Of a stretch of DNA of 56,937 bases, positions 1,474 to 53,476 are shown piece by piece. Both the position numbers and the translations under genes were made by a program. The stretch is from Andalucia godoyi And28. Taxonomy: Eukaryota; Protista; Jakobida. Position 1 is the first letter of the stretch. Every line of letters starts with the position of its first letter. Below the pieces are notes generated by a model. That model saw only the letters and a program-made list of their open reading frames with translations, was not told where the DNA came from and searched no databases. Location: contig VRVR01000014.1 in the NCBI GenBank assembly GCA_009859145.1, forward strand, positions 335,373 to 392,309, written 5' to 3'.

Positions 1474-4400
1474 ATGGGGAGCGTCATGCGAGCGGGTTTC
1501 ACTGCCTGTTTGGCTCTGTTTGTTTGCTTATGCGTTTCTCCGGCACATGCCGCCTGGAACCAAACGTTTGCTTTGGCTGTCGATGGATACACTACGCAGT
1601 CCGGATTTGGAACGTCAGTCGCTGTAGACGGCAACTACGCTGTTGTTGGAAGCTACGGATCTAACACGGCATACTTCTTCGCGAAGACGAATGGTGTCTG
1701 GAGCAAGACCGCTGTGGCCGCAGTTACAGGATATACTGCGCAGGCAGGGTTTGGATCCAGCGTTGCCATTTCTGGAGACTATGCCATCGTCGGCGCTCCT
1801 GCCGCTGGTCGAGCATATATCTTTGCACGAAACACCGCGACAGGTGCCTGGGGTACTACCGCCGTCACCACGATTTCGGCGTATTCGGCTACCTCCAACT
1901 TTGGATACTCGGTGAGCATGCAGGGGTCCACCGCTGTCGTGGGATCGTACACTGGAAATCGTGCGTATATCTTCGTCCGCTCTGGAAGCTCGTGGAGCGC
2001 GACCGCTGCGGCAACGCTGACCTCCTCCGATGCGTTCTACGGTGCAGCAGTTTCAGTGTCCGGGAACACGGTTGCTGTTGGTGCTCCTGGTACAAACAAG
2101 GTGTACCTTTACACACAGTCTACTGCTGGTGCGTGGAGCACAACTCCGTCCCTCACATTGGACGGACAAGTCTCGCAAACGTACTTTGGATCTTCGGTTG
2201 CCGTCGGCAGTTCTTGCATGGTTGTGGGTACTGGAATTAGCAAGGCTTTTGTGTTCTGCAAATCTAACAACCAGTGGACCAAAACCGTCACGGCGACGAT
2301 TGACTCGTATGCTGGCGCAGAACTCTATTTTGGCTCTTCTGTGGCGATTTCCGACAATTCTATTGTGATCGGAGCGTACGGAACCAACAAGGTGTTTGTC
2401 TTTGACAAAAATAGCGATTCCTCTTGGCCGGTGACTGCAACGCGAGTGATCAACCGGTATGCGACGTCCAACAGCTTCGGAAAGACAGTGTCCATTTCTG
2501 GTGACTTCATTTTCGTTGGTGCTCCCGACACAACGCAGGCTGCGTATTTTATCCCCAGTGTTTGCGGAAGTGGAACGTACGGAGCGAGTGCGTCCAGTTG
2601 CACGAGCTGTCCTGCCGGAACTTACAGTGCTGTTGAAGGAGCAGCGACTGCAGCACTGTGCACCGCTTGTCCGGCGGGTACTGCGAGTTCCACGGTTGGC
2701 GCTTCTGCAGTGTCTCAGTGTGTCGCATGCTTGCCTGGTTCGTTTAGCTCCTCCACAGGAGCTGCTACTTGCAGTGCATGCCCTGTTGGTACTTTCAGTG
2801 CGGCTGCTGGCGCTACTTCCTGTTCGTCGTGCCCTGCGGGAACTTTTAATCCGTCAACGGGTGGAGCAGCAGCAGCATCGTGTCTCGAGTGCCCTGCGGG
2901 TTCTTTTGGAGCTACTGCTGGTTTGGCGGCATGCAGCCCTTGCGGAGCTGGATCATACAGCGGTGTCCTGGGATCTCAGACTTGTTCGTTGTGCCCAGTA
3001 GGAACCTCGAACCCCAATCCAGGATCGAATGCAGCTTCTGCTTGCGCTCCATGTGCGACCGGATTGTTCGCGGACGTTGTCGGCCTATCCACCTGCAAGG
3101 CGTGCCCCGCGGGATCGTTCTCGGGATCCACTGGATCAACATCATGCGCCACTTGTGCTGCGGGATCGTATTCGACTGGATCCGCACCTGCGTGTTCACT
3201 GTGCCCGGCGGGCTCGTTTAATCCATCCACGGGTGGCTCTGCGTTGGCCTCTTGCCAAGCGTGCCCCGCGGGATCGTTCTCGGGATCCACTGGATCAACA
3301 TCATGCGCCACCTGTGCTGCGGGATCGTATTCGACTGGATCCGCATCTGCTTGTTCACTGTGCCCGGCGGGCTCGTTTAATCCATCCATGGGTGGCTCTG
3401 CGTTGGCCTCTTGCCAAGCGTGCGCTGCTGGATCGTTTTCCGACGTCGGTGCTTCGGCTTGCTCTCTTTGCCCTGCCGGGTCGTTTTCACCGGTCAATGC
3501 TGTAGCTTGTTCACCGTGCGCCGCTGGTACGTTCTCCGATACGGCAGGTCTGGCAACGTGCGCTGCTTGCCCTCGCGGATCGTTTTCATCCCAGACTGGA
3601 GCCACCACGTGCGCCCTCTGTGACGCTGGCCACTTTTCAGCGAATGATGGTGCGACTTCGTGTGATGCATGCCCCATTGGAACCTACCAGACTGCCACGG
3701 GTACCTCCTCTTGTGTTCCTTGCCCGGCTGGAACGAGCAATGTCGGTACAGGGGCAGTTTCTGCGGATTCGTGTGCGCTGTGCCCGGCCGGCTCGTATTC
3801 TGCTGCTGGATCTTCGGGATGCATTCTGTGCGAAGCTGGAAAGTTCTCCTCTGTTGCTGGAAGCGGTGTTTGCGAGTCATGCCCGCAGGGATCATTCGGA
3901 GCAACACCCGGTGCAACGCAATGTGCAACATGCCCTGCTGGCTCTTATTCAAACATTGCTGGTTCAGTAGCGTGCACACAGTGTGATCCTGGGTTTTTCA
4001 ACCCTGCAACTGGTTCGTCGTCTTCAAAGGACTGCGGATTGTGTCCCGTGGGAACCTACGCGGATGCTTCAGGTAGTTCTGCCTGTGCATCATGCCCTGC
4101 GGGTACATTCAACGGCAACCAGGGATCCACTGGAGCAAGTGCTTGCTTGTCTTGCCCTGCTGGCTCGTTCTCTGCCACTCCGGCATCTGGCGTGTGTGAT
4201 CAGTGTCCCGCCGGTACGTTCACCGCCGACAACGGACAATCATCGTGCGCAGCTTGCCCATCTGGACAGTTTTCACAAACGAATGGATCAGTTGCATGCG
4301 ATCTGTGCCCGGTCGGAACGTTCAATCCGTCCACGGGGTCGTCAACTGCTTCTGCATGTGTTGCATGTGCCGCTGGAACCGCTTCCAGTCAGATTGGATC

Positions 4401-5532
4401 CTCTGCTTGCGCAGCCTGCCCGACCGGAACGTATGCTGATTTGACTGGCCAAGCAGCGTGCACAGCCTGCCCTGCGGGTACCGTGAACTCCAATACCGGC
4501 TCAGCTTCGGCGGACGCTTGTGTTGCCTGTGTCGCTGGTACATACTCTGACGCGACAGCAACATCTTGCGCCGCTTGTGCTGCTGGATCGTATGCAGCCA
4601 CTGCTGGTAGCGCATCCTGTTCCGCATGTGCAGCCGGATCGTTCGCAAGCTCTGCCGGTGCAGTCACTTGTGATTTGTGTCCTGCGGGACAGTTCTCAAA
4701 CGCGACAGGCTCCACGAGTTGCGACCAGTGTCCGTCTGGGACATTTCGCGCGGATGTTGGTGGACAGTCGGTTTCTGACTGCTCCCCTTGCGCAGCGGGC
4801 TCTTTCTCGTCGACGGAAGGCAGTGCAGCGTGCAACTTGTGTCTGCCAGGGTCCTTTGCCTCTTCGGCAGGCTCGTTGGCTTGTTCCGAGTGTCCCGTTG
4901 GAACGTACAACAAGGAGTCTGGATCTGTGGATGAGACTGCCTGCACCCCTTGCGGCGCTGGATCTTACGCCGACGCGACAGGCTCTTCTGTTTGCAACCT
5001 CTGCCCTGCAGGCTCGTACAGTGATGCCACGGGCGCTTCCAGCGCAGACGCATGCACCAAGTGCCCTGCCGGAACCTTCTCTTCATCAGTTGGAGAAGTC
5101 TCGGTAGATTCGTGTGCTCCTTGCGAAGCTGGCTTCTACAATGACGTGGAGGGTGCCACAGTCTGCCAGGCATGCTTGCCCGGAACATTTGGCAACTCCA
5201 CCGGAGCAGTCTCTTCGGAGGCGTGCCAGCCATGCCAGCCGGGATCGTACGCGCCCACTTCTGGGTCTGCAAGCTGCTCGTTGTGCAATCCGGGTACCTT
5301 CAATCCGAGCTACGGCGCGGTCAACACAACCCAGTGCACCTCCTGTTCGGCCGGCACGTATGGACCTGCTCCTGGACTGACCACCTGTGTGTCGTGCCCG
5401 GTCAACCAGACCTCCCCGATCGCATCGATTTCGGTCTCCGATTGCTACACGAGTGTTTCGTTTGCAGTGCCGATCACGATGTCATCCATATTTGCAGTGA
5501 TTGTTTCTTTATTCGGAATGTTGACAATGTAG
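1474..5532 (+). CDS. Secreted/surface protein: signal peptide, 7 FG-GAP (integrin-alpha-like) repeats, long CxxC Cys-rich (GCC2/GCC3, ephrin-receptor-like) stalk, hydrophobic C-terminus (GPI signal or TM) (1352 aa)
   Basis: Hydrophobic N-terminus ending AHA. Seven FGxSVAxxGxxxxVGA-type repeats. Roughly 50 C(P/A)xGxF/Y-CxxC units. Terminal SIFAVIVSLFGMLTM with no cytoplasmic tail. Confidence 0.85.
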   Translation: MGSVMRAGFTACLALFVCLCVSPAHAAWNQTFALAVDGYTTQSGFGTSVAVDGNYAVVGSYGSNTAYFFAKTNGVWSKTAVAAVTGYTAQAGFGSSVAISGDYAIVGAPAAGRAYIFARNTATGAWGTTAVTTISAYSATSNFGYSVSMQGSTAVVGSYTGNRAYIFVRSGSSWSATAAATLTSSDAFYGAAVSVSGNTVAVGAPGTNKVYLYTQSTAGAWSTTPSLTLDGQVSQTYFGSSVAVGSSCMVVGTGISKAFVFCKSNNQWTKTVTATIDSYAGAELYFGSSVAISDNSIVIGAYGTNKVFVFDKNSDSSWPVTATRVINRYATSNSFGKTVSISGDFIFVGAPDTTQAAYFIPSVCGSGTYGASASSCTSCPAGTYSAVEGAATAALCTACPAGTASSTVGASAVSQCVACLPGSFSSSTGAATCSACPVGTFSAAAGATSCSSCPAGTFNPSTGGAAAASCLECPAGSFGATAGLAACSPCGAGSYSGVLGSQTCSLCPVGTSNPNPGSNAASACAPCATGLFADVVGLSTCKACPAGSFSGSTGSTSCATCAAGSYSTGSAPACSLCPAGSFNPSTGGSALASCQACPAGSFSGSTGSTSCATCAAGSYSTGSASACSLCPAGSFNPSMGGSALASCQACAAGSFSDVGASACSLCPAGSFSPVNAVACSPCAAGTFSDTAGLATCAACPRGSFSSQTGATTCALCDAGHFSANDGATSCDACPIGTYQTATGTSSCVPCPAGTSNVGTGAVSADSCALCPAGSYSAAGSSGCILCEAGKFSSVAGSGVCESCPQGSFGATPGATQCATCPAGSYSNIAGSVACTQCDPGFFNPATGSSSSKDCGLCPVGTYADASGSSACASCPAGTFNGNQGSTGASACLSCPAGSFSATPASGVCDQCPAGTFTADNGQSSCAACPSGQFSQTNGSVACDLCPVGTFNPSTGSSTASACVACAAGTASSQIGSSACAACPTGTYADLTGQAACTACPAGTVNSNTGSASADACVACVAGTYSDATATSCAACAAGSYAATAGSASCSACAAGSFASSAGAVTCDLCPAGQFSNATGSTSCDQCPSGTFRADVGGQSVSDCSPCAAGSFSSTEGSAACNLCLPGSFASSAGSLACSECPVGTYNKESGSVDETACTPCGAGSYADATGSSVCNLCPAGSYSDATGASSADACTKCPAGTFSSSVGEVSVDSCAPCEAGFYNDVEGATVCQACLPGTFGNSTGAVSSEACQPCQPGSYAPTSGSASCSLCNPGTFNPSYGAVNTTQCTSCSAGTYGPAPGLTTCVSCPVNQTSPIASISVSDCYTSVSFAVPITMSSIFAVIVSLFGMLTM
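3100..3423 (+). repeat. Intragenic 159-bp tandem duplication (2 copies, 53 aa each)
   Basis: Copies start at 3100 and 3259 (gcgtgccccgcgggatcg...) and differ at 4 positions by manual alignment. Confidence 0.95.
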
Positions 5533-9423: not shown

Positions 9424-10932
9424 ATGGATGCATTTCGAGCTGCGGAAAAGCTGTATCGGTCCGCGTCGTCATTGGAGGACCGCTACATCGCGACGCACTT
9501 TCCGAAGCTTGCGTTTGAGCGCGAACCCATGGGGGTTTCAGACATGTCGATTCCAAAGGTGCGCTGCAGTGCTCGCTTTCCGGGGCTGTACATTGTGCGA
9601 AACGCACTGAGTCCGTCTGCGCAATTGGAGATCATGAAGAAAGCGTTTATGGAGTACTGCAGTCCTCCGAACGACACCAACCTGCATGCTCATTACAGCA
9701 GCGACAGGCTCCAGCAGCTGTGGAAGGATGCATGCGATGTGTATGCGTGCGAGAAGAAGGAGAAAGGGCAAATCCACGATGCGTCGAAGCGGCCCTTGCT
9801 GGAGCTCTTGCGATGGTCTACTCTTGGGATCCGGTACGATTGGTCCGCAAGGAAGTACGATTTCGGATCGAACGACCGTCAGTTTCCTGCCGATGTCGCT
9901 GCACTCTGCGATTCTGTCGCGAAAGTGTGTCTTGGGAACGATTTCACATTCCGGGCAGAGGCAGGGATCATGAATTACTACGTGCCCAATTCGCAGCTTT
10001 GTGGACACGTCGACGATGCAGAACTGGCCTTTGACGCCCCGATTGTTTCTCTATCTCTTGGCAACTCGTGCATCTTTCTTGCAGGCGGCGACTCGAAGGA
10101 TGTTGAGCCGGATGCATTCGTCCTTCGGTCTGGTGATGCGGTTGTCATGCACGGTGCGTCACGAAGATGCTATCACGGGGTAGCAAAGATCTTTTCCGGA
10201 ACCTTGCCAGCATTCTTGCTTCCTCAGAACGTGCCAGACGACAGTAGCTGCTGCAGGAAGCTTGCAGAGTTTTGGAAGGACATGCGGATCAACGTGAATG
10301 CTCGGCAAGTGTTTCCATCTCCCGAGCCAGCGCTTCCTGTGCCGGACACGAGTGGCAAGCCCAGCGGCATAGCAGCACAACCGGGAACCCAAACCGCATC
10401 GCAGATGGCCGCTCGTTTGCAGTTGATTTCACACGACGAGGGTGGATGGTTTCGGCAGACGTATGAGACCACGGAAACGGTTTCGACCCCCGATCGGATT
10501 GATGGCGTTCGCCCGGCCATGAACACGATTTATTACATGCTTACTGGTATTCAATCCATCGGTCATTTGCATTCCAACATGTCAGATATCATGCACTACT
10601 ATCACGGTGGAAACCCGATCTTGTATGTTGTGCTGAACGAGGCGCACATGACACTGGAGCGGTTCGTGATGGGAAGCGATGCCGCGTGCGGACAGGTTTT
10701 CCAGCTTCTTGTTCCTGCGAATCTCGTCAAAGCATCCGTGTTGCTGCATGCTGACGGGTCAATTCCCACCGCAGACCGCCCTTTGGATCCTGAAGAATGG
10801 GGGCTCATATCCGAAGTTGTAGCTCCAGGATTCGACTATCGAGATCGGCAATTGCTGTGCAAACCCAGTTGCCCTGCTTCCTTCCAGCAACTGCTGCACT
10901 CCTCTGTCGGCCTCGATCTGTTTCACAAGTAA
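9424..10932 (+). CDS. ALKBH1: ALKBH1-like Fe(II)/2OG dioxygenase fused in frame to a C-terminal Cupin_5 (DUF985) domain (502 aa)
   Basis: AlkB part: LRWSTLGIRYDWSARKY, AEAGIMNYY, GHVD, PIVSLSLG, LRSGD...YHGV, RINVNARQV. Cupin_5 part: HDEGGWFRQTY, NTIYYML, HLH...DIMHYYHGG, QLLVP, LISEVVAPGFDYRD. Confidence 0.88.
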   Translation: MDAFRAAEKLYRSASSLEDRYIATHFPKLAFEREPMGVSDMSIPKVRCSARFPGLYIVRNALSPSAQLEIMKKAFMEYCSPPNDTNLHAHYSSDRLQQLWKDACDVYACEKKEKGQIHDASKRPLLELLRWSTLGIRYDWSARKYDFGSNDRQFPADVAALCDSVAKVCLGNDFTFRAEAGIMNYYVPNSQLCGHVDDAELAFDAPIVSLSLGNSCIFLAGGDSKDVEPDAFVLRSGDAVVMHGASRRCYHGVAKIFSGTLPAFLLPQNVPDDSSCCRKLAEFWKDMRINVNARQVFPSPEPALPVPDTSGKPSGIAAQPGTQTASQMAARLQLISHDEGGWFRQTYETTETVSTPDRIDGVRPAMNTIYYMLTGIQSIGHLHSNMSDIMHYYHGGNPILYVVLNEAHMTLERFVMGSDAACGQVFQLLVPANLVKASVLLHADGSIPTADRPLDPEEWGLISEVVAPGFDYRDRQLLCKPSCPASFQQLLHSSVGLDLFHK

Positions 10933-11648: not shown

Positions 11649-13397
11649 ATGAGCCGTTCTGTTCTGTCCATCCATGACTTGTCTCCGGTGCAGTCTCCGT
11701 CACACGCTCTGACACCGACGGCTGGTTTGTCATTGCAGACGCGACAGGGGTCATCGAGAAAGGAGTTTGCGATGTCCTCTTCGTCGCTCCGCGAGCTGGG
11801 CAATTCATCCGCATCGTCATCCGCAGCGGCGGCGACAGCGAGAGGGACAGCGACAGGGACAGGAACGGAATCAGTGCCAGTTTCATCGTTTGGAAAAAGC
11901 TCGAGGACTGCCCAAGTACTGGATTCAGAGTTGGATCGACTTCGGTCGTTTTGGTCGGCGACTCGGAAGGACCTGTCTGTGCATGCACACCGGTTATCGA
12001 TGGAACACGAAAGAGAAAAGTCGGATGTTGAGGATGCTCGAGAAAAGCTGCAAATCGCGCTGGAGCAAAGCAAAATATATAAAGACGGCATCGAACAGTT
12101 GGAAGCAGCGCTCGCGGAGTCGAATGACAAGTGCAGACTGCATGAGATGACTCTGAAGTCCTCGAAAATGGAAAATGCTTTTCTCAGGGAACAAGTCTCT
12201 ACGCTCAAGCTGGAATTGGAGAAGACGCAGGATACGCTGGGGTCGCACATGAGCAAGTACGACATCCAGTCCTCGCAGATCGCACAGCTGATGTCCAAAC
12301 TGAAGGGGCTGTCTTCCGAAACTGCTGACAAGCTGGCGTATGCGTTGGAGAGGAATCAGGTGCTGGAGTCAGAGAATGTGGCGTTGCTTGACGAAGTGAC
12401 TCTACTGCGGCAGTCTTCTGCGGAGGGAGAGAGGTACAAACAGCAGTGCGTGACGATGGATCGTGCGATGCGCGCTTGCGAGGTGCATATGGCCCAGTCT
12501 GTGTCTGCAAAAGAGCAAGTCGGCGAACTGCGGGAAACCGTCCGAAGACTTGTTGGCATGCTTGGAAAGACAAGGGAGTTCGCTGGGTTGCTGTGGGACG
12601 GAAAGGCAGAGATTGTGTTTTTTGGAGGCGGCCATACGTCTGCCAAACGGAAGACGGTCATATCCGGTTCGGGCTCTGCAAAGTCCGAGTTCATTCGGTC
12701 CGATTGGCTTCCTGCAGAAGCTCTCAATGCACTTCGAAGGTTCCGTGATCAGCATATGCCGAATGTCTCTGTGTCCGCGTTTTCCGAGATGCTAACGTCG
12801 CTGAATCAGGCGTTCTTGGAGCGAGAGTCGCACTCTGTCAGCCGCCTGAAGCACAAGTACAAGCAGCAAATATTGGATCTGAAGAGACAAGTGGGCCAGC
12901 GGCAGCCGTATTCTTCTGTCGTCTACGAGGAACGAATTCAACATTTGAAAAAGGAACTCGAGGAATGTAAGTCTTCTCTTGATGTGCGTGGAGACCAGAG
13001 GGAATGGTTGCACAAGTTTGGCAAGCTGATTGAGAGAATCCAGAAGCTGGAAAAGGACAATGAATTTCTGGAAGAGCAGCTGCAGTCCCATCGTGCTCCG
13101 GAAGTTGAACTGCAAGACTGGGCATACGCCGACGTAGCCTTGAACCGGGTTCTCACGGAATTTGCAGCTGCGCGGAAGCATTTTGCCGAGTACGACCCTG
13201 TCCAATCACAAATCTCTGAGATTGTGTCGCAGCTCGAGCACTTGGTGTCGTTTGTGCGTGTGCGGCGGTCTGATCGAGACGGTGCGCTTTGCAGTTCAAG
13301 AAGAATCGAGAGCGCGAGTCGTAGCAATACCGACGACGATCAGAACGGTCAGTCGGAGGGTTCGGAGGGCAGCAGCCACGATCTGTCAGATGAATAG
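11649..13397 (+). CDS. Long coiled-coil protein of unknown function (582 aa)
   Basis: Long ORF from ATG with heptad-like E/K/L/Q-rich segments and Ser-rich termini. No family recognised. Confidence 0.7.
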   Translation: MSRSVLSIHDLSPVQSPSHALTPTAGLSLQTRQGSSRKEFAMSSSSLRELGNSSASSSAAAATARGTATGTGTESVPVSSFGKSSRTAQVLDSELDRLRSFWSATRKDLSVHAHRLSMEHEREKSDVEDAREKLQIALEQSKIYKDGIEQLEAALAESNDKCRLHEMTLKSSKMENAFLREQVSTLKLELEKTQDTLGSHMSKYDIQSSQIAQLMSKLKGLSSETADKLAYALERNQVLESENVALLDEVTLLRQSSAEGERYKQQCVTMDRAMRACEVHMAQSVSAKEQVGELRETVRRLVGMLGKTREFAGLLWDGKAEIVFFGGGHTSAKRKTVISGSGSAKSEFIRSDWLPAEALNALRRFRDQHMPNVSVSAFSEMLTSLNQAFLERESHSVSRLKHKYKQQILDLKRQVGQRQPYSSVVYEERIQHLKKELEECKSSLDVRGDQREWLHKFGKLIERIQKLEKDNEFLEEQLQSHRAPEVELQDWAYADVALNRVLTEFAAARKHFAEYDPVQSQISEIVSQLEHLVSFVRVRRSDRDGALCSSRRIESASRSNTDDDQNGQSEGSEGSSHDLSDE

Positions 13398-13670: not shown

Positions 13671-16600
13671 TCAGAAATCAAACCAGGAAATAGACTCTTG
13701 CAAGTCCGCAAATGAATTGATCTCGGCTATCGTCCGCAACATTCGAATGGCTTCGGCAACGTCGTACGACGCCAATCCTTCTTTCAAATCCTTGACGTCG
13801 CCCATGTTATCAATCTTCATTTCTTTGCTGTTTCTACCCGGAATGTGGTAATATGTGTCCTGAACTTGGAAAGAAACCATCAGCTTCTGAACATGCTCCA
13901 GCAAGCGCTGCTCAATATCATGCGGGTCGAACAGACCACCACAATACTGACATGGCCATTGGCCATCCGGGGTCCTGTCCTGGAACAGGTCGAGATCTTG
14001 AACAGTCATGCAAAAGCCACAAATGACATCATGAAGAGCATACGATTTCGAACGAAGCGAAAACTCATCATCTTTGGAGAATTCCTTCACTGCGAGGATT
14101 TTCAAACAATTTTTCTTGACCTTGTTGGCCTGTTCTCGCAGTCGGGAGTCGCAACTGAAAACTTCAAAGAAAAACTTGGTGAAGTCCAGGGCAGGATTTC
14201 CGGTGACCGCCCGTATGCTTGTGCCTTCGTCCTGCTTCTGAAACTGCGAAACATGACTGTGGATGTTCTCCACGATATTCAAGACATGCGAGCCCAGGAC
14301 ATCCGCAAGATAGGCACCCATTGACGAAGGAACTTCGTCCGACACCTCATTCCTTTCGTTGAATCGATCTGCTGCAGTGTGATGCGCCGTTGACGGGGTC
14401 TCCGAAACCTGTCGTTGCGATAACGCACTGCGGAGGAATTCGCGCACCAGAGGTATACACAGTTGTTGTACAGGCTCGGCAAGACACCGAAGCACGTTCC
14501 ACTGCTCAAAGAAGAAGAGTTCCACTTCGTCCGTATCGTCCAGCCGTGACAGCGCGGTAGAGCTCAGTCCGAACCCCGAGTAGTTCCGAATGTCCACAAA
14601 CAGCAACTGCTCAAAGACGTTTGCGGAGTGCAGATCGACAAGACGAAACACGTCGATCGACTTCAAATATGTAAACACGTTGTGAACGTAGCGAAGACCG
14701 TCGGCAAGATTTCTCTTGCCCGTTGAAATGAACAGTTTTTGGAAGGAAGCGAAGACCAGAGACATACCCTGATTCTTCAGTTGCAAACAGAGTTTGACAA
14801 ACACCTGCTTCATCAACCGGCGAATCGCTCTGAACAAGGTATCATCGTGGAACCGAGAATGGGCGCTCCGCAGCCATCGAAAGAAATTCTGCAGCAGAGA
14901 ATCGGCACTGGTACTTCGATTTTGAGTGGCCTCCAAGACCAGAGATTGAGCAATGGAGCGAAGGACTGGCAGGCACCAGGTGTCACTTACTTTCACAGAT
15001 GCCGTGTCTCCCTTTTCCTTCTTTTTCGCTTTGGCATCTCCAAGATATCCGTTCATGTCCAGATGCGGCACATCATTCTCAAAGAGAGCCGCGTTACACA
15101 AAATTGTGTCAATGTCAAGATGCAGGAGATCCACCTCGACGCAAACCTTGTCATAGAAGCCTGGAACACACAGAATGGTGGGCTTCTCTTCATCACCCCA
15201 TATCGCGGATTCCTCGTCTTCTGTGCCACCGAGATCTGGTTTCAAACCATCTGAAGCCCACATAACAAAATTCTCCTTTTGCAATTGTCTCCCGAGAATC
15301 ACATCCATACAAAAGATGTGGACATCATTGTCGATATTGCCCAACGGCACTTTCGCAAACGCAGCAATCTCGATGCGCCTTTCGTACCAAGGAAGAAATT
15401 GTGCGGCGCGGAGGACAGAAGTTCGAACAAGCGGTTTGATCCAGTCCAACGCTGGCAACAGAGTGTCGCGATCGGAAACTGGCAGGTCGATGACGGGTGA
15501 TGTCCCGAAGATTTTGCTGAGGTGCGGCAAGCAAGCTCGGGACCCTTGGAAAAAGAACACGCGAGAGGATTGCACATTGTTTGTCGCAGTATGAACAAAC
15601 GACTCGACATTTCGAAAAAGTTCATCAACGGAAGAAGAAGCCTGGAACATGAAAGACGGAACCTCGATTTCGGTGGTTCCCAGTGCTTGTTGAAACATTT
15701 CGGAGGAGTTGATGCGCGGAACCTGCAAATTGCGGAACGGCTGAAGAAGAAACTGTGCTCCACGAACAGATTGCAGAGACTCAAAAACAAGAACAACAGC
15801 AATGCCTCTAGGCTGTGCTCCGGACGTCATCGTCGAATAGATGAAAACTTTCCTGCAAGAAGGCCGAGCGACGAAGGAGACTCGCTTCTTGTCCTTCTTT
15901 GCAGACATCACGAGGTCTTGCGGTCTCATGATGAGGGCTGAATCGGCAGCCACATCTCGAATCTGTGGAGCGAACCGCAGCAAACTTCCATATTCGACCA
16001 GGAATCGAAACAGCGGCGACGTGCCCGACTCGTAGATTCCTTCCACATCAGGATTGTTCAGAAAGGACACGGCTTGGGATGAAAAAGACAGATACTGGTC
16101 TTCGGTGAATTTGTGTTGGTACAAGAACATCGGAACTCGGCCATGCGGAAGCACTTTGAAAACCCGTTCCGATGTACCCGTTGTATCTTCTGAATAGGTA
16201 TTGATGAGAACAGTGCGATCCAAACTGATTAGAAAAGACGAAATGTATCCCGTTTCGCTGATGTACCACGCACGGTGAACTCCTGGCTTCTCAGTCTCTT
16301 TCAAACACAACAGTTCAAAATCGGATCGGACAAGTGCGTCCGCTTGCCGACGCAGCATTCCTCCGATACCAGTCTGCAACTGAAGAGATGAAGATGCTGA
16401 ATCGGAGTCTTTCCCCGAAACCAAAGCTCGGCGCCTTTTCTTTGCGCGAAGCTCGCGCCACTTTTCCTTTTGCGTTGCCAGCCACTGCGGATAATGCTCA
16501 TGCTTGTAGAAGGCAGCACCGAGCGACATTCCGGCCGTGGAAGGGTCGAAAAACCCGCTGAAAGCGTTCTCGAGCTCACGACTTTTAAGTTGGGATTCGG

Positions 16601-19600
16601 AGGAGGCAGCAGCAGATTTGATTGTGGAGGGCGGACGGGTCACCAGCGATTCATCCGCCTTGCCAGCGACAGCAGGGCCGGACATATCTTCAAGATCCAC
16701 TATCGCTGACGCCGCGGAATTCCGGGCAGCAGCAGCAGATGCGGACGCAATAGATCGAAGCAGGTGAGAGACATTGACCGCGGTCGAGGACTGCTCGCGG
16801 CCGCGAACCACCCGAGACAGCCAATCCGGTTGCACAACTCGAGGGACAGGGTTCTGCATTTTCTGAAATCCCGAGGGAATTGTGACAATTTTCTGAATCG
16901 ATTTCGAAAGTCTTTCAATGTAGTAGTTCCAATCCAGAATATCCCGAAGTCCAAAATCTTGCAATGATGCATCACGACACCATTTTCTCAAATAAAACTT
17001 CCGGACACTCTCTTCAGCAGAGAAAATCGCAACAGGGATGGCCCTTTCGGTTACCGGAAGGCCCTCGGGCTTCTTGGAAATGATAAATGTACAATTCAGT
17101 CCCTTGTCTTTCACCATTCCTGCGCCTAAAAACTCAGCCAGCCGCTTTGCAGTCGAAATAGCGGTAGATTTCTGACTACCATAATCTTCAAGTGAGCGAG
17201 ACATGTTGGACGACTCAGAGATCAAGCTCAGCAATTCGTCATCTTCGACGTCCACGCCCTTTGTGTACAAAATATCCAAGTAGTGATTGCAAAGCGCACC
17301 TACTGCATCGTAACACTCTTGCAGTGTTTTTCCTTCAAGAAATGCCGGAAACAGCTGGCTCTGAAACACCTTGACAAGCTCCAACTCTCCTCTCCGTTTC
17401 ACTTCAAATCCTTTCAGCTCTTTCAGTTTGTGATCATGATCAAAAACTGCGTATCTCTTCTTGATAGACTTTCCCTCTTCCAGAGCCGCCGGAAGAATCA
17501 TTGCCAGATACGGACCATCAATTTCGAAAGAGATTGTGCACTCGGAAGACTTTGAGTAATCCTTCACACGGGGATCCAGCACTTGGTACTGATGGTTTGA
17601 AAAATTGTGATGCACGTCTGCATTCAGCATGGCACACGGATACGAAATGCTGATTTTAGGCCGATCTTTCAAATCTGTCTTGAAGGTGAAGTTCTCGGGA
17701 AAGGAACACGGAAGACACGTCCAGATGCCGTCTGTATCGAGCTCCAGCGGTACACTGATGCGATCCAACAGCGACCTCGCCATTTTAATGATGTTCGCGC
17801 CAGTATGCGTGACAATTCCTGCCATTTCCATGGAGTACCAACGAGCGCCGCGGCGCATGACATAGCCGTAAAAAGAATTCAGAATGCACTTATGCGCCAG
17901 TTGCAACGAATCATACAGGACCACCATGTCTGAGCATTCTCGCAGCCGCACAGTGTCTTTGGCTTCTTTAGCGGACTGCTCGTGCTTTTGCCACGTTTTG
18001 TGCTTGGCTTTGTACTCATAGCGGCGATCACGGAACAAGCGCACGGTATCGACGTAGAAGGGATTCTCTCGCTGACATACAATAGACTCACGTTCTTCGA
18101 GCTGTGTTTCGTGGGTTCTCTTGTACACTCGCCTGGAGTATTCACCCACGCGCTTTTTCAACAATTCGTCTTGCGTTTCTACCGGCAATTCTCCAAACGG
18201 AACCATTTTTTTGTCTTTTCCAAACACCTGCGGAACAACTTCTGTCTGCATCTGCGTCTTCAAATGCTCGTACTCGGATCGAGATGCCTTGAAGAACTCT
18301 CCGCGCCAAATCCAATTCATTTTCCGTTGACAGTCTGATTCCGGTCGGTTGTGGACGCATGCCGCGCATGTCGCTTCATCGACAATCGATACAGGCTGCA
18401 AGCGATTTGTCAAGATGATGTTTGGATACATTGCCGACACGTCAAGATGATAAATCAACGGAGTCTCCATTCTTCGCGGATTGTCTCTCAGGGCTTCCAA
18501 CTTGGAAGCGATCGCTGATCGCACTTCGTCATAGTTCACAACATGAGAGAGAGGCACCCCGCTTTCGACTTCAATGGCAAATTTCAGGGACTTGTCCAAA
18601 TCATTCAGCAGCATTTCAAATGCTGTCGGGTCCAAGTGAAACTTCATCGGAATGTCCGATCGGAAAACGCCGGATTGCAACGCCTCAACATGCCCACCGA
18701 CATATGTCTCAGATTCAAGGCGATGCCCCTTGAAGAACGATTCCACGTCCGAAGAGTACTTGTCGGGGCACAGAATGTCCTTCTCCGTCGCTTCCACCAT
18801 CAGCAATGTCTCGCAGAGAGTGCCAGACCCCTTTCGCAGCACTTCATCAGGAGACATTGGAATGATCGTGCAGAGAGAGAAGATAAACGGATGTACGTAC
18901 TTCATGTAGAGATAGTACGTTGCAACGGCGTCCGACACCGAGTAGGATGCCATTGTCCACGGTTTCTCCTCTGCAAATCTCATCATATCTTCTGGATGAA
19001 TTTCCAATGGGTCGTAGCCAAGCTTGGCTTTCGTGACAGCCTTCAAACCTTGGGAGCCTTGGGGAAGATACGAATCTCTCTTCACCCAAGCAAACGCATC
19101 CATATGAATACCGGATTTCGACATGTACTGTTCGTCGTCCTTGTAATACCCAATTTCCGCTCTCAGATCAATTCCGTACACTTGGCATCGGGCGTCAATG
19201 AAGGGCCAGTCGAAAAAGTCGCCGTTAAACGTGACCATAATAGATGGCTTGGTTGCTTGCAGCTCCGAAATCCAACGGTTCAGGAGTTCCCGCTCATTGG
19301 CTACATTGAAGACTGTGAACGGACCTTCGTACTCGGGCTTGGGAGTGTACTCAAAATCCTCAATGTCTTGCGATACGACCTGTCGGTTGACAATCAGATA
19401 TCCTTTTCGATCAATCATGTAAGAAATCATCATGATTTGATCCGTTTTCGCATCAGGAAACTTCAGCGGTGCCTTCGTGGTTTCGATATCAAACGCACAA
19501 ACCTTCGGTTCCGCAAATCTCTCTAGCTCCTTCATGTGTTGGATGGCGGTCTTACCAGAATCGGCATAGACACGGTACCAGTACCCGACTCGGATTCTCA

Positions 19601-20350
19601 AATCAATGGATACCCGGATGTGGTACTTCACGTCATACTCACGAATATCGTTGATGTAGTCCGCCGGGTCGATGGATCCGGAGAACTTTGAACGAACAGC
19701 AGAGAACAACGACTCTTCGTCCCCTAGGAAATCTGTTCTGGTACGTTTTTTGTTCCTTTGTAGTGCGTCAAAAACTACTTTGCGGACCTCCATGAGTTCC
19801 TGTACATTTCGGGTCTGGATTTTCAACAGCGGGCGCTTGAGCCCAGACAAATGATTCAACATGGACAGATCCTCTACGTACTCTTTCGACACTTCAACAA
19901 TTCGTTTTTCGAACTTTTCAACAATCCATCTCCGGACATCGTCCTCAAAGCCAGTACGCACACCGACGAAAAAGTATGGAAAATGTTGAATAGCGCATTT
20001 GAATTTGGTTCCATCCTGCATGGCACATTCCGCGACTGTCAGTACAAAAAAAAACGAACGAGTCTCTCTGCTGCACATGTCCAGAACAGAGAAAGGGGAG
20101 GAAAAGAAAAAGAAAGGAACATACATTTTGAATAAAGTACAGTTCGAGAGCTGACACTTGCACTCCCAGTTCTTCGTCAAAAACAGACGACTGGTGTTCG
20201 ACGGCGATTGATGCGACAGCAAAAAAAAAAGTATACACAATAATATTAGTATTGTCCCCATAAAAGCAACCGTTTCAAACCGCCACCACGACAACAACAA
20301 GAAGAGCAACAGCAATCGGAGATTGGTATCACTCACCGACAAGTGGAGGG

Positions 20351-20388
<38 letters not shown>

Positions 20389-20643
20389 GACAGCAAGGCA
20401 TACCGGGCGCATGTTGACGCACCAACCAATTCGTTCATTGTTCCCGGAAAAGTCTTCAAATCCAAAGCGGTCTGCCACCGCCGTATCCTTGGCGGTCTCG
20501 ATTTCGCGACGATCATTGCGTTCGCGTGCAGACCTGTTGCTGCTGCTGCTGCTGTTGTTGTTGTTGCTGCTGCTGCTGTTGAACGACGTTGTTGGATATG
20601 CCTTGCCATGGCTCGCAGAATTCTTTCCTCGATAAAACGCCAT
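13671..20643 (-). CDS. POLE: DNA polymerase epsilon catalytic subunit; exons 20404-20643, 20125-20190, 13671-20015 (about 2216 aa)
   Basis: Exonuclease motifs FDIETTK, FNGDFFDWPF, YSVSDA. Polymerase motifs YHLDVSAMYPN, QLAHKCILNSFYGY, ELDTDG. CysX motif CAACVHNRPESDC. The spliced N-terminus RFGF...GWCVNMRP/SSVFD...LYFIQN/DGTKFK matches the Pol2/POLE consensus. Confidence 0.95.
20016..20124 (-). other. Spliceosomal intron 2 of POLE (109 nt, phase 0)
   Basis: GTATGT donor at 20124, TACTGAC branch site, TGCAG acceptor at 20016. Gives YFIQN-DGTKF. Confidence 0.88.
20191..20403 (-). other. Spliceosomal intron 1 of POLE (213 nt, phase 0)
   Basis: GTATGC donor at 20403, pyrimidine tracts, TACTAAT branch-like site, CAG acceptor at 20191. 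Splicing restores the conserved frame. Confidence 0.85.
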
Positions 20644-21218
20644 ATCAAGGTCTACAACAACAACAGTAACAGCAACGGAAGACACACACACACACACACA
20701 CAAACACCAAAAGCCAATCGACGGGAAAAGATAAGAGTACACAGAAGAAACCGACAACCAAAAAAATTAAAATAAATAAAATTTCAAAAGAAAAACAGTA
20801 AACTAAACTTTAATAAAAAAACTGGAAAGAAAGAGAGCAAAAGAGAAGATTGAGAAGAACGAAAATTTAGCGAATGGACAAGATGGAATTCGGAGCAGCT
20901 CCCGGTTTGGCGCCAATGCAGGCGGGAAAGGTTTCATCGCCGAAGTGGCACCATATCCAGTGTCATCGCACAATAGGCATCGGGGATTATCGGACGTGTT
21001 TTTTTTTTTTGGAGTCGGGGCTTTTTCATGAGGCAGTCTCCGCACTGAGTTCGCACGCAACGCAACCCTCCTTACTTGTATTACTTTTGCTTGGACTTGC
21101 CTTGCTGCTGCCGTTCGTCTCAGCGGTGCTTGAATAGTCGAAACTCGGAAGCCCAGATTCCGGAGTCCGGGCACAGAACAGCAGCCTTGGGGAGCACGTT
21201 GAGTAGTCAGGCAGCAGC

Positions 21219-23869: not shown

Positions 23870-26800
23870 TTGTTCAGCCTCCTGCAAGGGATGAGTCACC
23901 ATGTCGGCGAAGGACTGCCTTTTGAGTGTCTGGAACCGAAAATCGAGTTGCGGAGTGTGGTTGTCCGGACATCGAAGGCTCTGTCGAGAATCACGCTGCG
24001 GTCCAAGTCGGCAGAGCCGCAGGTCATCCAGCTTTCGTCCTCCTTGGGACGCATTATCTGTTTTCAACTTGACAATCAAAATATTCAAGGCGGAAATTCG
24101 CAGCCGTCGCTTCCAGCGTCCAATTCGCAAGGCCAGTTTGATGACCCAAACGATGATTTCAACGAGCTCTTCAACGAGATCAATTTTGTTCGTGAAGTGC
24201 GACTGCTTCCGTTTGAGACGAAAGGAATCGTTGTTAGCTTTGATTCCGTCCTCGCTGTTTCCCAGTCCTCGGTTCTCAAAGCCGTGGACAAGTACTCATT
24301 CTTCACCATTTCAGGGAATTTGGTCCTGTCTTCGAACGCCCGCCAGCTCCAAATCCCATTCGAAGCGTCGATGTGCAAGTCTGTGATCGACTGCGATACG
24401 AAGGACCTATTTTTCGGGGAATGCACATCGGACGAGGTGTACGTCCGAGATTTCACCGTCAAGAACCTTTCTGAATTACCTGCCTCATTTGTGATTTCAA
24501 CCAAAAACCTGAATTATGGCACTTTAGATTTTTCGGAATTTTCAACGGGAATGTCAATTTCGTCCAGTCGCAATATTGGCCCGTTTGCATCCGTGCGCAT
24601 TCGAGTGTCGTTTCGTCCGACGTTCGTAGGCGCAGTGCAATCTGCGTTTACCATTTTAAATGAAGTGGATACGGAAAATAGGGTTCGCGTTGATTTTGCG
24701 GCTGCTGTTGTTTCCAAGTCCTCGCGGTCTGCTGGAATCTGGCTAGACTGCGGCTCTGTGCTGGATTTTGGAGATTGCTACACGTCTATTGAACGACAGT
24801 GTCTGATTTGCATCAAGAACACATCTTTGGAGGCCTACGATTTGCTGTTAGAGTCGCCATTCAAAGAGGAATTGACATTTTCGGTCAGAAATAATACGTC
24901 CACTGCGTCGCCCTTTGGAGACTCTCGTAGTAGTACGCCCAGTACGGATTCCGACGAGGATGGCATTTTCAGTGTAGTATCCAGTCCTTCGATGAAGAGA
25001 TCCATGTCTGTCGAGGTACCGGATCTTGGAGATTCTGTGTTTTCGACTGCAGGTTTGGGGTCCCTGGAATCGGATCGCCAGACCGTCCGTCCGGAAGATC
25101 GGTTCTTGCATCTGTCCAGGGCCGGCCTTTCCTCTTCTGGGTCTTCGTTCTCGACGGTTCCTGTTGCTCAGCAAGGTTACTGCGCAACGCCGAGACTGCA
25201 GAGCTTCCGCTCTTCTCCTACTTCTCCATTGGGACCAAACAAGCGTGATCCAGAATCCGAAAATCCTTCCCAGATGATTGCAGAGGTCGTCCGGAAATTG
25301 CAAGTTGAGCACATGACAATCTACCCTGGAGAACGGAAGGAAGTTTCGGTTCACTACATCCCAAAGTCGGATGGCATGCCAACATCCTCGGCCAGCAAAC
25401 TCATGTCTCGTTCGTTCTACTTCATTGTTCGGTCATCGGACATGGACTCCTCGTACTCGAAAACGGTATTATGCAAAGCAAAGGTCTGTTCGTCACTGGT
25501 GGATGTCAATTTAGATTCGGCGTTTATCGATCTCGAAGAATGTGAAATCGGATTGCGCCGGACGTTTCAAATACCCATTGTTAACCGCTCTGAGCTTCCT
25601 GCTGAAATCTGTGTCAGTTTGCAATCCACGATCCTCCTTACGGATGCAATGACATACGTGATTCCTCCGAAAGGAAATTTGCTGCTGCCTTTTAGCATTA
25701 CTCCTCGACGCACTAATCTGCGTTACCGGAAGGAGATTATTCTTACGAATACATGCAATCGGGAGTTTCGGTACATCGTCCTTGTGAAGTCGCAAAATGT
25801 GGATCGCAAGGTTCAAGTCATCCACAGTTCCTTTTACAGTCTTGCGGTACACGGGGAAACTGGGTTTTTGCGCACTGTTGACTACGGGGCTGCGGCCATT
25901 AACAGTGTTGCTGTTCGAAGGTTGGTTATTAAAAATACCAGCCCCAAGTCGATTCGCCTGCGGTTTGTGCCGTTGAGCCCCCAAATTGCCTTATTCCAGG
26001 CGGGCTCCCTTCCAAAGAATGTAGATATTGAGACGTTTGCGGAGTTGGGGAAAAAGGAAGCATTCGTTAGCACTGTGGATGAGTCCACGCAGAGTTTTCT
26101 GGAGCGGTTCTTACCATTGCCCCCAGATCTGAAGAAGGTCGTTGAAAAGAACAACTTTCGATCGGCATTTAATGCTGCTGCCGTCGCAGATGCGCCCAGT
26201 GTTGAAGGATCGACAGACTCCATTGGCTCGCCCCCCGTTTCCGAAGGTTCTTCAATAGCGTCATTGTCGGATGAATTGCTGCAGTCTCGACTCGATTTCA
26301 TTGTGCAGGAGTTTATTGATGATAGCTGCCGTTTGCCAGCCGACGACGGGTCTGTGACAGCAGATGCCGAGGAGCAGTATGTTCGGCGCCGCACAAATGT
26401 TGAGCGCGCTCTTCGAAGGTGCATTGAATTCGGGCTGCTGCGATCTTGTCGGTATGTGTTCCTGGGTCCGGACGAGGAGCGCTCATTGTACCTTGTGTTG
26501 AACCCAACGGAGGAGACACCGCAAGGCGAATCCGCTGGAAAACTCAAAAAGGCAGAGCTGGATTTGCAGATATTGCTCGAGCACTATTCCAGGGAATTGT
26601 TTGAATCGCTGCTTGCTGCGGAAGACATTGGAATCTTAAAAGACGTCCCTGCGCGCATGATTACCGCGCGCACGATGCTTTGCCGGTCGATGATGGAGGT
26701 TTCGATGAAGAACCTCAATTTCGGAGAACTGAATGCGCACGAGCATCGCATCAGAGCCCTTACAATCAACAACGTCAGCGAGCTTCCGCTGTTTTACAAA

Positions 26801-29800
26801 GTGCAGAAATCGGGCTCCGTGGCTTCTGGTGATTTGCTCATACCTTCGGGAAGGGTGGGTATCATCCGTCCCTACGGAAGTCGTGACATCCAGTTTTTCT
26901 TCCAGCCATCCTTCACCGGTCCATTTCGAGAGACCTTGACGCTGGAGAACTTGCGAGACAGGTCAAATGATCAAATCATTACCGTGAAAGCGAATGTGCT
27001 GAAACCCCAAAAGTTTTCCATTCGGCCCGATTTTTTGGATTTTGGCATTTTAGGCGTGCCGGAGGGTAAGTCAAGGGTGCAGCGGTTCTATGTTACCAAT
27101 CGGTCAAACAAGAATCGTTACTTCCTTGTGTCTGTTGATGGTGGGTTTTCATCAATGCGCGATGTTCAAGTGGATTTTCAGTTTGAGCTTGAAGCTGGCA
27201 AAGGGGAAATTGACCCGGCTCAAATTGAGGAATTAATCGAAAAGGCAGAGCACAAGCGTCGCATTGGAGTCCGAAAACAGAAACTTGACAAAGTCAAAAA
27301 ACTCACAGAGAAGATCCGGCGGCTGAGGGCAATGCTCAGCGGAGAGGATATCGATGCTGCTGCGTTTTCTGAAGTTGAAGACGGAGGCACTCCAAGGGCG
27401 GGGCGTGAAGGGCGGAAAGTGAATAACTCGATCTCGCTCGTAGTAGGCCCCGCGGACACGCAGGCAGTTTTGGCCGTCGTGACGTGCCGCTGCCTCAACA
27501 CAGAAGTCCCCGTTGGGTTCAGAACCATCCGGGGGAAGTTTTTAGTTTACGAACGCGGAAATACGGACGAGATTCGAAAAGTGGATTTCGAAATCTCTTT
27601 GAGCCCTTCCGATGATCGATCGGTGCCGATTTACAGACCCCCTTCGCTTGGTCTGCCTGTCCCTGCAAGCATCAAGAACTTGCAATTGGAAGTCCGCCAT
27701 GCACGGCAGCAGTCTACGATTGAAGTTTCAACTCCAACGCAAGTCGCACTGTCCTCATCCTCTCTGGTTTCCTCGGCATCTCCGCGTTCTCGGTTTCCAT
27801 TGCCCGATTTTCCGGTTTCCGAACCCCCGCTGTTTCTTCCGCACCCAAATGTAGATTTAGATGTGATGCTCATCAATTCTGAGAAGCAGATTGCCATTTC
27901 TGTGAGCAATCGCACCGATGAAGCCTTTTCATATCGCGCATCTGTGGGTTCAGCAGGTCTTAAACTTGTCTCTTCGGAAGGATCATTTGCCCCGGGCTTG
28001 AGTACAGTTTCGTTGATCTGTCAGCCGGCGTTCACTGGAAAATTTTCTTGGGAGGTGAGCTTCGTCTGTTCCAGTGCATCCTGGCCGTCCTTTGTTCTCA
28101 GCGGGGTTGTTACCGCACGAGTCATTCAACAATCGCCATTGACATTCCCGTCTCTTGGACCCGATGAGTGCCTTCATTTTGGGCACATATACTTGCCGCA
28201 TTCTGATTTTTTGGAAGAAGACTATGCAAAAACCAGTTCGTTGGAGATATTCAACAATTCGGAGGCTTTGTGTCGATGTACGATCTCCTCAAATCTTACC
28301 AAACAGATTTCCATATATTCGGATCCTTCTCTCACCGCTGCCGTTTCAAGCTTTGTTTTATCTGCAAATGAGCGCGTGGTATTGTTTGTGAAGCTCGTAC
28401 CACGCATCAAGAGGGAAATTTCTCAGGGAAATGAAGCTGTCGCTCGGGAAGTCGTCGGTGGAATCAATGTCAAAATTGTTGATGGTGACAATAACGAAGC
28501 ACTGCATTCTCGCACTATCCGCTTGGATTCGGTTGTGGGATTCTCCGGGCTTTCTGTCCCTCAAACCGTTTTTGATGTTCCTTTCGACTCGGCATCAGAG
28601 TTTGCGGAATGCACCGTCCGCGTGCAAAATGAATCACTCCTCCTCCCGGCAATGTTTTCACTGGTCGGCATTCAGGGCTTAGAGATACTGGATGCGGTTT
28701 TCTGCGTTCCGCCGGCGTCTTCTTCAAGCATCCGTGTTCGGCTGCGCAATCGGTACTCTGGATTGCAGTTTGCTGCTTTCTGTGTCGAAGACAGCAATTC
28801 ACCCGGTCGTGTTTTTCGTGTCGTGATTCGATCCATCTCGTCACGCGGCTATCTGTCGCTGACACCCATTATCGCAACGAAGTCAAGAAACTCAGCGTTT
28901 GACGTGTCAGGACTGCCGGTTTTCTTCTCCGGCGACCAGTTGATTACAGTTATGAACGACTTGCACTCTTCTATTCGAGATGTGACCGTTGACGAGCAGA
29001 CTGTATCCCCGCTTTCCTTAAGCCAGCTTAGCCGCAGCATCCCGTTTGCTTCCGTATTCAAAGTTCATAATTGTACTCCAGTGCCGCAGCAAGTCGTATT
29101 TCTGTCCAAGAGCCCCCTTGCCATTGTCCCTCTCTCGCGGAAGGCCATAACGATTGACTCTTTATTGCGCGATGCGCGTCATTGCGAGGTACCTGGTCTT
29201 CAGAACAACATTGATACAGAGTCGCTGTTTGCGACCCTGGGTAATTTTTGCGGCCCGCCGTTCTCCATTTCTCCGGACGACACCACAACGGTGTTCGTCA
29301 TTGCCACTGCCGCACCATTGCTAACTTTGCAGAACCTTGAAGCACTGAAGTCCAGAGGATCTGTGGTCGTTTCGGATTTCATTCGATGTTTATGCATCTC
29401 GCAAGACACAACGAGTCTTGGTGCAGAGGCTGCCTTCACGACTTGTCTGTACACTCCTTTGATCAGGCCTTCTTCCCAGACAGTGTCCATTGGAGACGTC
29501 GGGCACTGCAATGGCTGGAGAGATGTGGTGTTCTCTTTTGGGCTAGAAGGAACCGGCCCTGTCCCTGTTGCTGTGTCTTTTGACGATCCTACCAAGTTGA
29601 TCACATTCAAGATCCCCGATAACGATCAATTCTTATTTGTCCCGCCAATCGGAGGGACAATTCAAGTGCAATGTTCGTTGTCAGTGTCCTCGCTGCCACG
29701 CGATGTGGGCGGAGATGCTGTAACATTTGTGCACGTCCGTTTGCGAGACAGCGTTGCTGATTCGTTCATGATGTCAGTCAAGTATCGCGTTACGGTTCCG

Positions 29801-53061: not shown

Positions 53062-53476
53062 CAATTCGAAAATGAATGTTCTGCTTGGCGTTGTCTCATA
53101 CGTAAAATCAGTGGCTCAGTGAAGCCAGAAAAACCAAAAATGCAAGCCACAAAGAAAATCGGCAAGGGAAAAAAAATTTGGCTTCCTAGCGTCAAGCCTT
53201 ACACTTCAAAATGGATCCCTGCCACTGTAAAATGGATCTCTTACATTCCGTGATGTTTGGGTGTACTTTTGTTTGCCAATTTGCGTTCTTCTGGTTTTCA
53301 GTTTTCGAAAGTGTTTGGGGCTCATATACAAGAATAGCGCGGGACGATCCGGCACGAACATCTAGCACAGATTGCTGCACAAGTCTGCCGTTCTGCTTAG
53401 CGCAGTCCTCGTTTTTGTGTTTTGTGCGGTTTCTACTTCCGTCTTCCCGGTTCACTGCGAACGAATTCTTTTTTAA

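Follow-up and report, generated by a model that had tools for sequence, protein, structure and literature searches.

The gene for the DNA polymerase epsilon (Pol epsilon) catalytic subunit of the jakobid protist Andalucia godoyi And28 has lost all four cysteines of CysB, the second metal site of the C-terminal domain. The gene (13671-20643, minus strand) lies in a stretch of 56,937 nucleotides (assembly GCA_009859145.1, contig VRVR01000014.1, positions 335,373 to 392,309 of the forward strand), hereafter called the window. The loss is real, and it is present in two relatives as well, P0121 (Logan assembly of SRR28285705) and P0122 (a Joint Genome Institute (JGI) metagenome). In the literature both CysA and CysB count as conserved across the four eukaryotic B-family polymerases, and the CysB of Pol epsilon binds zinc, not an iron-sulphur (Fe-S) cluster (PMC7544198, PMC6582351). 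We consider it likely that the window carries a functional, single-locus Pol epsilon whose CysB was converted into a zinc-free hairpin, in an isolated, intron-poor lineage of flagellated protists. The original prediction, made from the DNA letters, had described an intact CysA (CGFC...CQYC) followed by a CysB without cysteines at 13740-13875; both observations hold, and the interval brackets the segment correctly.

The segment at the CysB position

The C-terminal translation of the minus strand reads ...DVICGFCMTVQDLDLFQDRTPDGQWPCQYCGGLFDPHDIEQRLLEHVQKLMVSFQVQDTYYHIPGRNSKEMKIDNMGDVKDLKEGLASYDVAEAIRMLRTIAEINSFADLQESISWFDF up to the stop codon, and the cysteine-free stretch is found near the 3' end of an open frame at 13671-20648. 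CysA (13941-14021, minus strand, as are all features of the gene) is complete: CGFC at 14010-14021 and CQYC at 13941-13952 provide C2101, C2104, C2124 and C2127, and the site aligns to human CysA. The profile PF23250 (zf_DPOE_2) scores 24.3 bits over it, below the 27-bit cut-off. CysA is followed by the inter-finger helix (13857-13940), which was predicted as a helix by AlphaFold2 (AF2; model residues 97-116, predicted local distance difference test (pLDDT) > 90) and ends in the conserved FQVQD (13857-13871) that precedes CysB in canonical proteins. The next 36 amino acids, TYYHIPGRNSKEMKIDNMGDVKDLKEGLASYDVAEA (13749-13856, residues 2156-2191), contain 0 cysteines. Their conserved core, PGRNSKEMKIDNMGDVKD (13788-13841), places a Pro-Gly turn at the site of the first CxxC knuckle and keeps the ancestral KIDNM hairpin. 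The protein closes with the C-terminal helices IRMLRTIAEINSFADLQESISWFDF (13674-13748; IRMLRTIA...LQESISWFDF), which are homologous to the human ones and were modelled as helices over model residues 149-166 and 169-175 (pLDDT > 90). In tblastn this terminal stretch was the best match of the window to a canonical C-terminus (E 0.01).

In a phmmer search against PDB sequences, residues 2096-2276 of human POLE aligned to the last 175 residues of the window protein (E = 2e-18), and the human CxxC...CxC falls on the cysteine-free stretch. The former ligand columns hold cysteine at 0 of 4 positions; they read Tyr, Ser, Lys and a gap. From QD to the next helix there are 36 residues in the window and in human alike, as the original prediction had stated (about 36) when it favoured substitution over a deletion or a missed intron. 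An in-place replacement between homologous flanks is indeed what the alignments show, but it did not come about by plain substitution: both knuckles were remodelled by insertions and deletions, and only the central hairpin KIDNMG is still recognisable. Against canonical sequences (for example QVQDLRCIKCNSIKADNMSAKCECSGEW), the multiple alignment shows the first knuckle, C-x-x-C, lengthened by 4 residues to YHIPGRNS, the central hairpin retained (IKADNMS in the canonical protein, MKIDNMG in the window), and the second knuckle, C-x-C-S-G, deleted with a loss of about 5 residues. The spacing is equal because the 4-residue insertion at the first knuckle is offset by the loss at the second. The idea that KIDNMGDVKD forms a calcium loop of the EF-hand kind was considered and rejected, as the motif is ancestral and present in zinc-containing homologues; KIDNMGDVKD does not fit the EF-hand consensus spacing.

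The profile of the second finger, PF22912 (zf-DPOE; gathering score 21 bits), had no match at E <= 10 in the window, P0121 or P0122. The same profile scored 56.3 bits on P0174 and 60.5 bits on P0129, both canonical, and 20.6 bits on P0210, a protein of a type that keeps only the first CysB cysteine. Where a C4 zinc ribbon has four Cys or His ligands on two knuckles, the segment has no cysteine and a single histidine that is not conserved in P0122. A cysteine-free run of 36 residues is unremarkable by itself. It is remarkable here because, in a survey of 127 aligned representatives covering the region (50%-identity cluster representatives nearest to the window), 103 have cysteine in all four CysB columns; the four cysteines of CysA are present in every one of the 127.

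That the missing finger is an artefact of the gene model or the assembly, with the true CysB in a missed 3' exon, in an alternative transcript or behind a frameshift, is hardly credible. The organism does splice, as two introns at the 5' end of the gene show. But one frame runs from FQVQD through the cysteine-free segment into the terminal helices, all of it homologous to canonical proteins; because the homologous flanks lie on both sides in the same frame, no exon is missing. The 273 bp between the Pol epsilon stop and the convergent neighbouring gene contain no CxxC...CxC in three frames. Elsewhere in the whole window, no CysB-like module was found by tblastn with three canonical CysB tails and by regular-expression searches in six frames. 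Also, two independent assemblies agree on the cysteine-free sequence, and on the syntenic contig of P0121 (L001) the gap after the polymerase stop measures only about 40 bp.

Conservation in relatives and predicted structure

A HMMER search with the last 200 residues against 1.84 billion cluster representatives returned 453 proteins at E <= 0.001. Close relatives among these matches are only two, P0121 (72% identical over 2109 aligned positions) and P0122 (42% identical over 872 positions); the next matches are at most 42% identical over the 200 residues of the query. Neither P0121 nor P0122 has any of the four CysB cysteines; at this position P0121 has FQVQDTYYHLPGRDSKEMKIDNMGEIKDL... and P0122 has FQVQDLLYNAPGRSAKEMKIDNMGETKDI.... 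The exon fragment P0134, a fourth sequence, resembles them with its cysteine-poor QVQDLVHDGRRDVKDDHMGDVMD. Loss in related lineages had been named in the original prediction as a finding that would speak against it, and since both relatives share the loss, the prediction is not supported on this point.

The replaced segment has the shared core PGRxxKEMKIDNMGxxKD, in which the window, P0121 and P0122 agree at 14 of 18 positions. From FQVQD onward 29 of 33 residues are identical between the window and P0121, yet for 11 of these 29 the codons differ. The Pro-Gly-Arg turn is written CCG-GGT-AGA, CCT-GGG-CGA and CCC-GGA-CGC in the three genomes. Within the clade the segment is conserved better than the average of the protein. 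Because the amino acids are conserved and the codons have diverged, the replacement is old, and the pattern indicates purifying selection on the segment. Going by these alignments, the feature is specific to the clade: the finger was not simply decayed but rebuilt into a well-conserved cysteine-free segment with the ancestral hairpin in it.

The window protein is 30-39% identical to every other full-length representative, so the lineage stands isolated. Scanning metagenomes for KEMKIDN and C[MN]TVQD[LV]D brought up no additional relatives. A word-indexed homologue search with the last 500 amino acids gave no matches, and with the catalytic region only matches of at most 63% identity; this search missed P0121 (72%), a cluster representative there, and its negatives are therefore not readable as an absence of close relatives.

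An AF2 model of the last 180 residues, built on a 32-sequence alignment, has a mean pLDDT of 88.5. Among PDB structures it matches best the C-terminal domains of human and yeast Pol epsilon (7pfo_B, TMq 0.77; 5vbn_B, TMt 0.83, root-mean-square deviation 2.2 A over 125 columns), and the helical bundle bearing the Dpb2/POLE2 interface is predicted with pLDDT > 90. The bundle and CysA are thus modelled as usual, and the shape of the new segment is uncertain in the model. No Dpb2 gene is present in the window.

The rebuilding is read as follows. The first CxxC knuckle became a longer Tyr/His/Pro-Gly turn (YYHIPGRNS), the central hairpin KEMKIDNMG was retained and the second CxC knuckle deleted. 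Unchanged are the flanking helices, which make up the three-helix bundle on which the B subunit (Dpb2/POLE2) is held. Turn-forming residues, aromatic packing and Lys/Asp/Glu pairs could then serve as a brace in place of the metal. We infer that the segment no longer binds zinc. It would still fold as a small beta-hairpin and pack against the bundle at its Dpb2 end, and may still contribute to the Dpb2/POLE2 interface.

The metal-free replacement claimed in the original prediction is very probably correct, as no set of Cys or His ligands is conserved among the three relatives. A different metal site, made from His, Asp, Glu or Met side chains, is very unlikely. Residues of this kind in the segment are His2159, two Met that are conserved, and several Asp and Glu. 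In P0122, however, Asn stands in place of His2159, and what fills the former ligand columns is Tyr, Ser/Ala, Lys and a gap. The KIDNM hairpin contains the conserved Asp and Asn and the second Met, which have equivalents in many zinc-containing canonical proteins and are therefore ancestral and not new ligands. A structural zinc site built on carboxylates alone would also be atypical.

Several points weigh against a functional Pol epsilon with a zinc-free hairpin. In model residues 121-140, which are the replaced segment, and only there, pLDDT falls to 56-64, so that the conformation is uncertain; the term hairpin is based on the prediction of two short strands and on the homology with the canonical ribbon. 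Low AF2 confidence as a general property of this region was considered and rejected, given that the canonical control P0129, modelled with the same 32 sequences, reaches pLDDT 85-93 at CysB. The clade is defined by three sequences, or four with P0134, and the conservation statistics are thin. Finally, the analysis covered 57 kb of the genome, and a second POLE copy could lie outside it. The gene in the window would then be a degenerating paralogue of a working Pol epsilon with a normal CysB, which we regard as highly improbable. Exon 3 is an uninterrupted frame of 6.3 kb in which every catalytic and Fe-S motif is intact, and the 72% identical orthologue keeps the same neighbour. Synonymous divergence goes along with amino-acid conservation inside the replaced module itself, and the representative search gave no sequence with a canonical CysB close to this lineage.

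Gene structure and surroundings

The preferred reading, a functional Pol epsilon with a rebuilt CysB, is supported by an intact gene. The gene is complete and encodes 2216 amino acids with one terminal stop, and its joined coding sequence is divisible by three. Splice sites were inferred from sequence and homology. Exon 1 (20404-20643) begins with the ATG at 20643-20641 and runs through 80 codons to ...GWCVNMRP, with the conserved RFGFE...GW.NM and a GTATGC donor from 20403 (read from the three-frame translation and the DNA of the 5' end). Intron 1 (20191-20403; 213 nt, GTATGC...ACTAAT...CAG) separates it from exon 2 (20125-20190), whose 22 codons translate to SSVFDEELGVQVSALELYFIQN. Intron 2 (20016-20124; 109 nt, GTATGT...TACTGAC...CAG) is followed by exon 3 (13671-20015), a single open frame of 2114 codons plus the stop at 13671-13673; it encodes the exonuclease domain, the polymerase domain, the inactive second polymerase module (DUF1744) and the C-terminal domain. 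The signals of both 5' introns are strong and yeast-like (donor GTATGY, branch-like site ACTRAY, acceptor CAG), and long pyrimidine runs are present. No intron interrupts the other 6.3 kb of the gene, and P0121 likewise has one long exon. A (TG)n microsatellite (about 20682-20705) lies immediately 5' of the start codon, and an AGC/AAC repeat in exon 1 (about 20536-20582) encodes the Ser/Asn run SSSSNNNNSSSSS.

Pfam matches were obtained for POL2_thumb (4.6e-79, full profile), DUF1744 (PF08490; 1.1e-71, profile positions 30-398 of 399), DNA_pol_B_exo1 (1e-48) and DNA_pol_B (1.8e-15). The catalytic motifs FDIET, NGDFFDWPF, YSVSD, DVSAMYPNI, KCILNSFYG and LELDTDG (exonuclease I-III; polymerase A, B and C) are all present. 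So are the four CysX Fe-S cysteines C652, C655, C664 and C749 (18054-18368; CAAC...C at residues 652-664, VCQRENPFY at 747-756), the motif being as defined in PMC6582351. By every sequence criterion applied, the gene is a working Pol epsilon. On the same footing the protein is a CysB variant that stays within the Pol epsilon family: the exonuclease and polymerase domains, POL2_thumb with CysX, DUF1744 and CysA are as expected, and the CysB ligands are absent.

The convergent neighbour (11649-13397, plus strand) encodes a 582-amino-acid coiled-coil protein that is 48% identical (E 8e-147) to the convergent neighbour of the polymerase on L001. This neighbouring gene on the contig of P0121 shows a weak match to CCDC39, a ciliary protein.

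The guanine-plus-cytosine (GC) content of the window is 50%, and tRNA and Rfam scans of the window gave no match. An open reading frame (ORF) at 9424-10932 fuses a 2-oxoglutarate-Fe(II) (2OG-Fe(II)) oxygenase (AlkB-like) to Cupin_5 (DUF985). An ORF with a DDE_3 (Tc1/mariner-type) transposase domain (51442-53061) and one with gag-like CCHC zinc knuckles (53211-54314) are likely remains of transposable elements. Three ORFs are very large (1474-5532, 23870-32092 and 41115-46571). One among them has 19 Ephrin_rec_like repeats with FG-GAP and NCD3G domains, one encodes a HYDIN/CFAP65/CFAP74-like ciliary protein of 2740 amino acids, and one, of 1818 amino acids, combines TmcB-type tetratricopeptide repeats with a C-terminal nucleotidyl cyclase domain. 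Taken together, these ORFs indicate a flagellated protist.

CysB in other Pol epsilon proteins

The 24 surveyed representatives that lack a full CysB are 3 of the window clade, 13 with the first cysteine only, 2 of a C-D-C-C type, 1 reading C-T-C-S and about 5 that are truncated or whose gene calls apparently run into an intron. Genuine losses thus amount to about 19 of 127 and follow at least three sequence patterns. The first-cysteine-only group (QDxRCxxTxxVSxRL...S....PL) comprises P0143, P0156, P0163, P0169, P0179, P0191, P0192, P0208, P0210, P0226, P0243, P0246 and P0262. A search with an alignment of the degenerate C-termini added 11 fragments, one of them (P0275, related to this group) from the Marine Microbial Eukaryote Transcriptome Sequencing Project (MMETSP); on the origin of P0275, the group probably consists of marine protists. 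In the C-D-C-C type (C.RD...C.C), represented by P0166 and P0207, Asp replaces the second CysB cysteine, and zinc might still be bound through Cys3-Asp. This group takes in the cluster members P0292-P0307, and P0180 looks related; metagenomes contain the P0166 cluster in abundance (19 members; contigs of up to 1 Mb). P0245 has a CysB pattern of its own.

All these natural CysB-degenerate proteins resemble the window protein in their intact CysA, their incomplete CysB and their retained terminal helices. They differ from it in that they either keep the first cysteine and have lost the KIDNM hairpin or keep three ligands with Asp as the second. A rough neighbour-joining tree (20 full-length proteins, no support values) puts the window clade, the first-cysteine-only type and the C-D-C-C type in different places, which suggests that the losses were independent. 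P0174 (GCA_000004985.1), with a canonical CysB, comes from a locus with 34% GC; we take the assembly to be that of Naegleria gruberi, which the GC content fits. We found no report in the literature of a Pol epsilon that lacks CysB naturally. For Entamoeba and some Microsporidia it has been reported that the entire Pol epsilon, or the C-terminal half of the protein, was lost.

The canonical C-terminal domains (human POLE p261C, 5VBN and 7PFO; yeast Pol2, 6WJV) have the same domain order, CysA, helical bundle and terminal helices as the window protein, which in comparison lacks all four CysB ligands and a PF22912 match and has both knuckles remodelled. What CysB does in Pol epsilon has been addressed in yeast. 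As ter Beek et al. 2019 (PMC6582351) showed, Pol2 with the CysB substitutions C2167S/C2181S purifies as a stable four-subunit complex whose polymerase, exonuclease and PCNA-dependent activities are those of the wild type. The CysB mutant grows normally at 30 and 37 C, and the CysA mutant is temperature-sensitive (PMC6582351). In the cryo-electron microscopy structure of the yeast holoenzyme, the density at CysB was too weak for modelling a ligand (PMC7308368). Like the yeast mutant, which still assembles and grows normally, the window protein would be a Pol epsilon in which the zinc site of CysB is not functional, and the mutant provides an experimental precedent for a dispensable metal. The mutant, however, carries two engineered substitutions in an otherwise canonical finger, whereas in the window four ligands have gone naturally, the loop lengths have changed and the new sequence is conserved. 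Pol delta and Pol zeta have a [4Fe-4S] CysB at the homologous position of the C-terminal domain beside the B subunit. In Pol delta this cluster is needed for B-subunit binding and activity (PMC6582351); the Pol epsilon CysB binds zinc and is dispensable, and the window extends this contrast.

These results do not support the "normally invariant replisome module" of the original prediction, which is an overstatement: about one sixth of the nearest representatives are without a full CysB, in at least three patterns, and the yeast CysB mutant is normal (PMC6582351). They also bear on whether the segment could be a neutral relic, a flexible linker without a role that was left behind once zinc binding became dispensable. 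The lack of a phenotype in yeast CysB mutants, the low AF2 confidence in the segment and the different, apparently free decay of CysB in other lineages would all agree with it. But 14 invariant core positions out of 18 across proteins of 42-72% identity, diverged synonymous sites and conservation above the protein average make a mere relic unlikely.

We retain the conversion of CysB into a zinc-free hairpin within a functional Pol epsilon, with the segment as a probable zinc-independent structural remnant of the finger on the Dpb2 side. A wider claim is conceivable but doubtful: PGRxxKEMKIDNMGxxKD might be more than a relic and serve as a re-engineered interface that needs no metal and has co-evolved with an altered Dpb2, or with some other partner in the replisome, in a deep-branching protist clade; the CysB zinc site would then be recurrently discarded across eukaryotes. 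The significance is smaller than first proposed because the site is neither invariant in nature nor needed in yeast, and known biology is refined here without a new mechanism being revealed. Were the wider claim true, the textbook status of CysB as conserved in all B-family replicases would be overturned. A CysA that is never lost and a CysB that is lost repeatedly mirror the yeast phenotypes and lend evolutionary support to the observation that temperature sensitivity is confined to CysA mutants. They also sharpen the contrast with Pol delta, in which CysB is indispensable, and the window clade would offer a naturally optimised zinc-free module on the Dpb2 side with which one may ask what the finger contributes.

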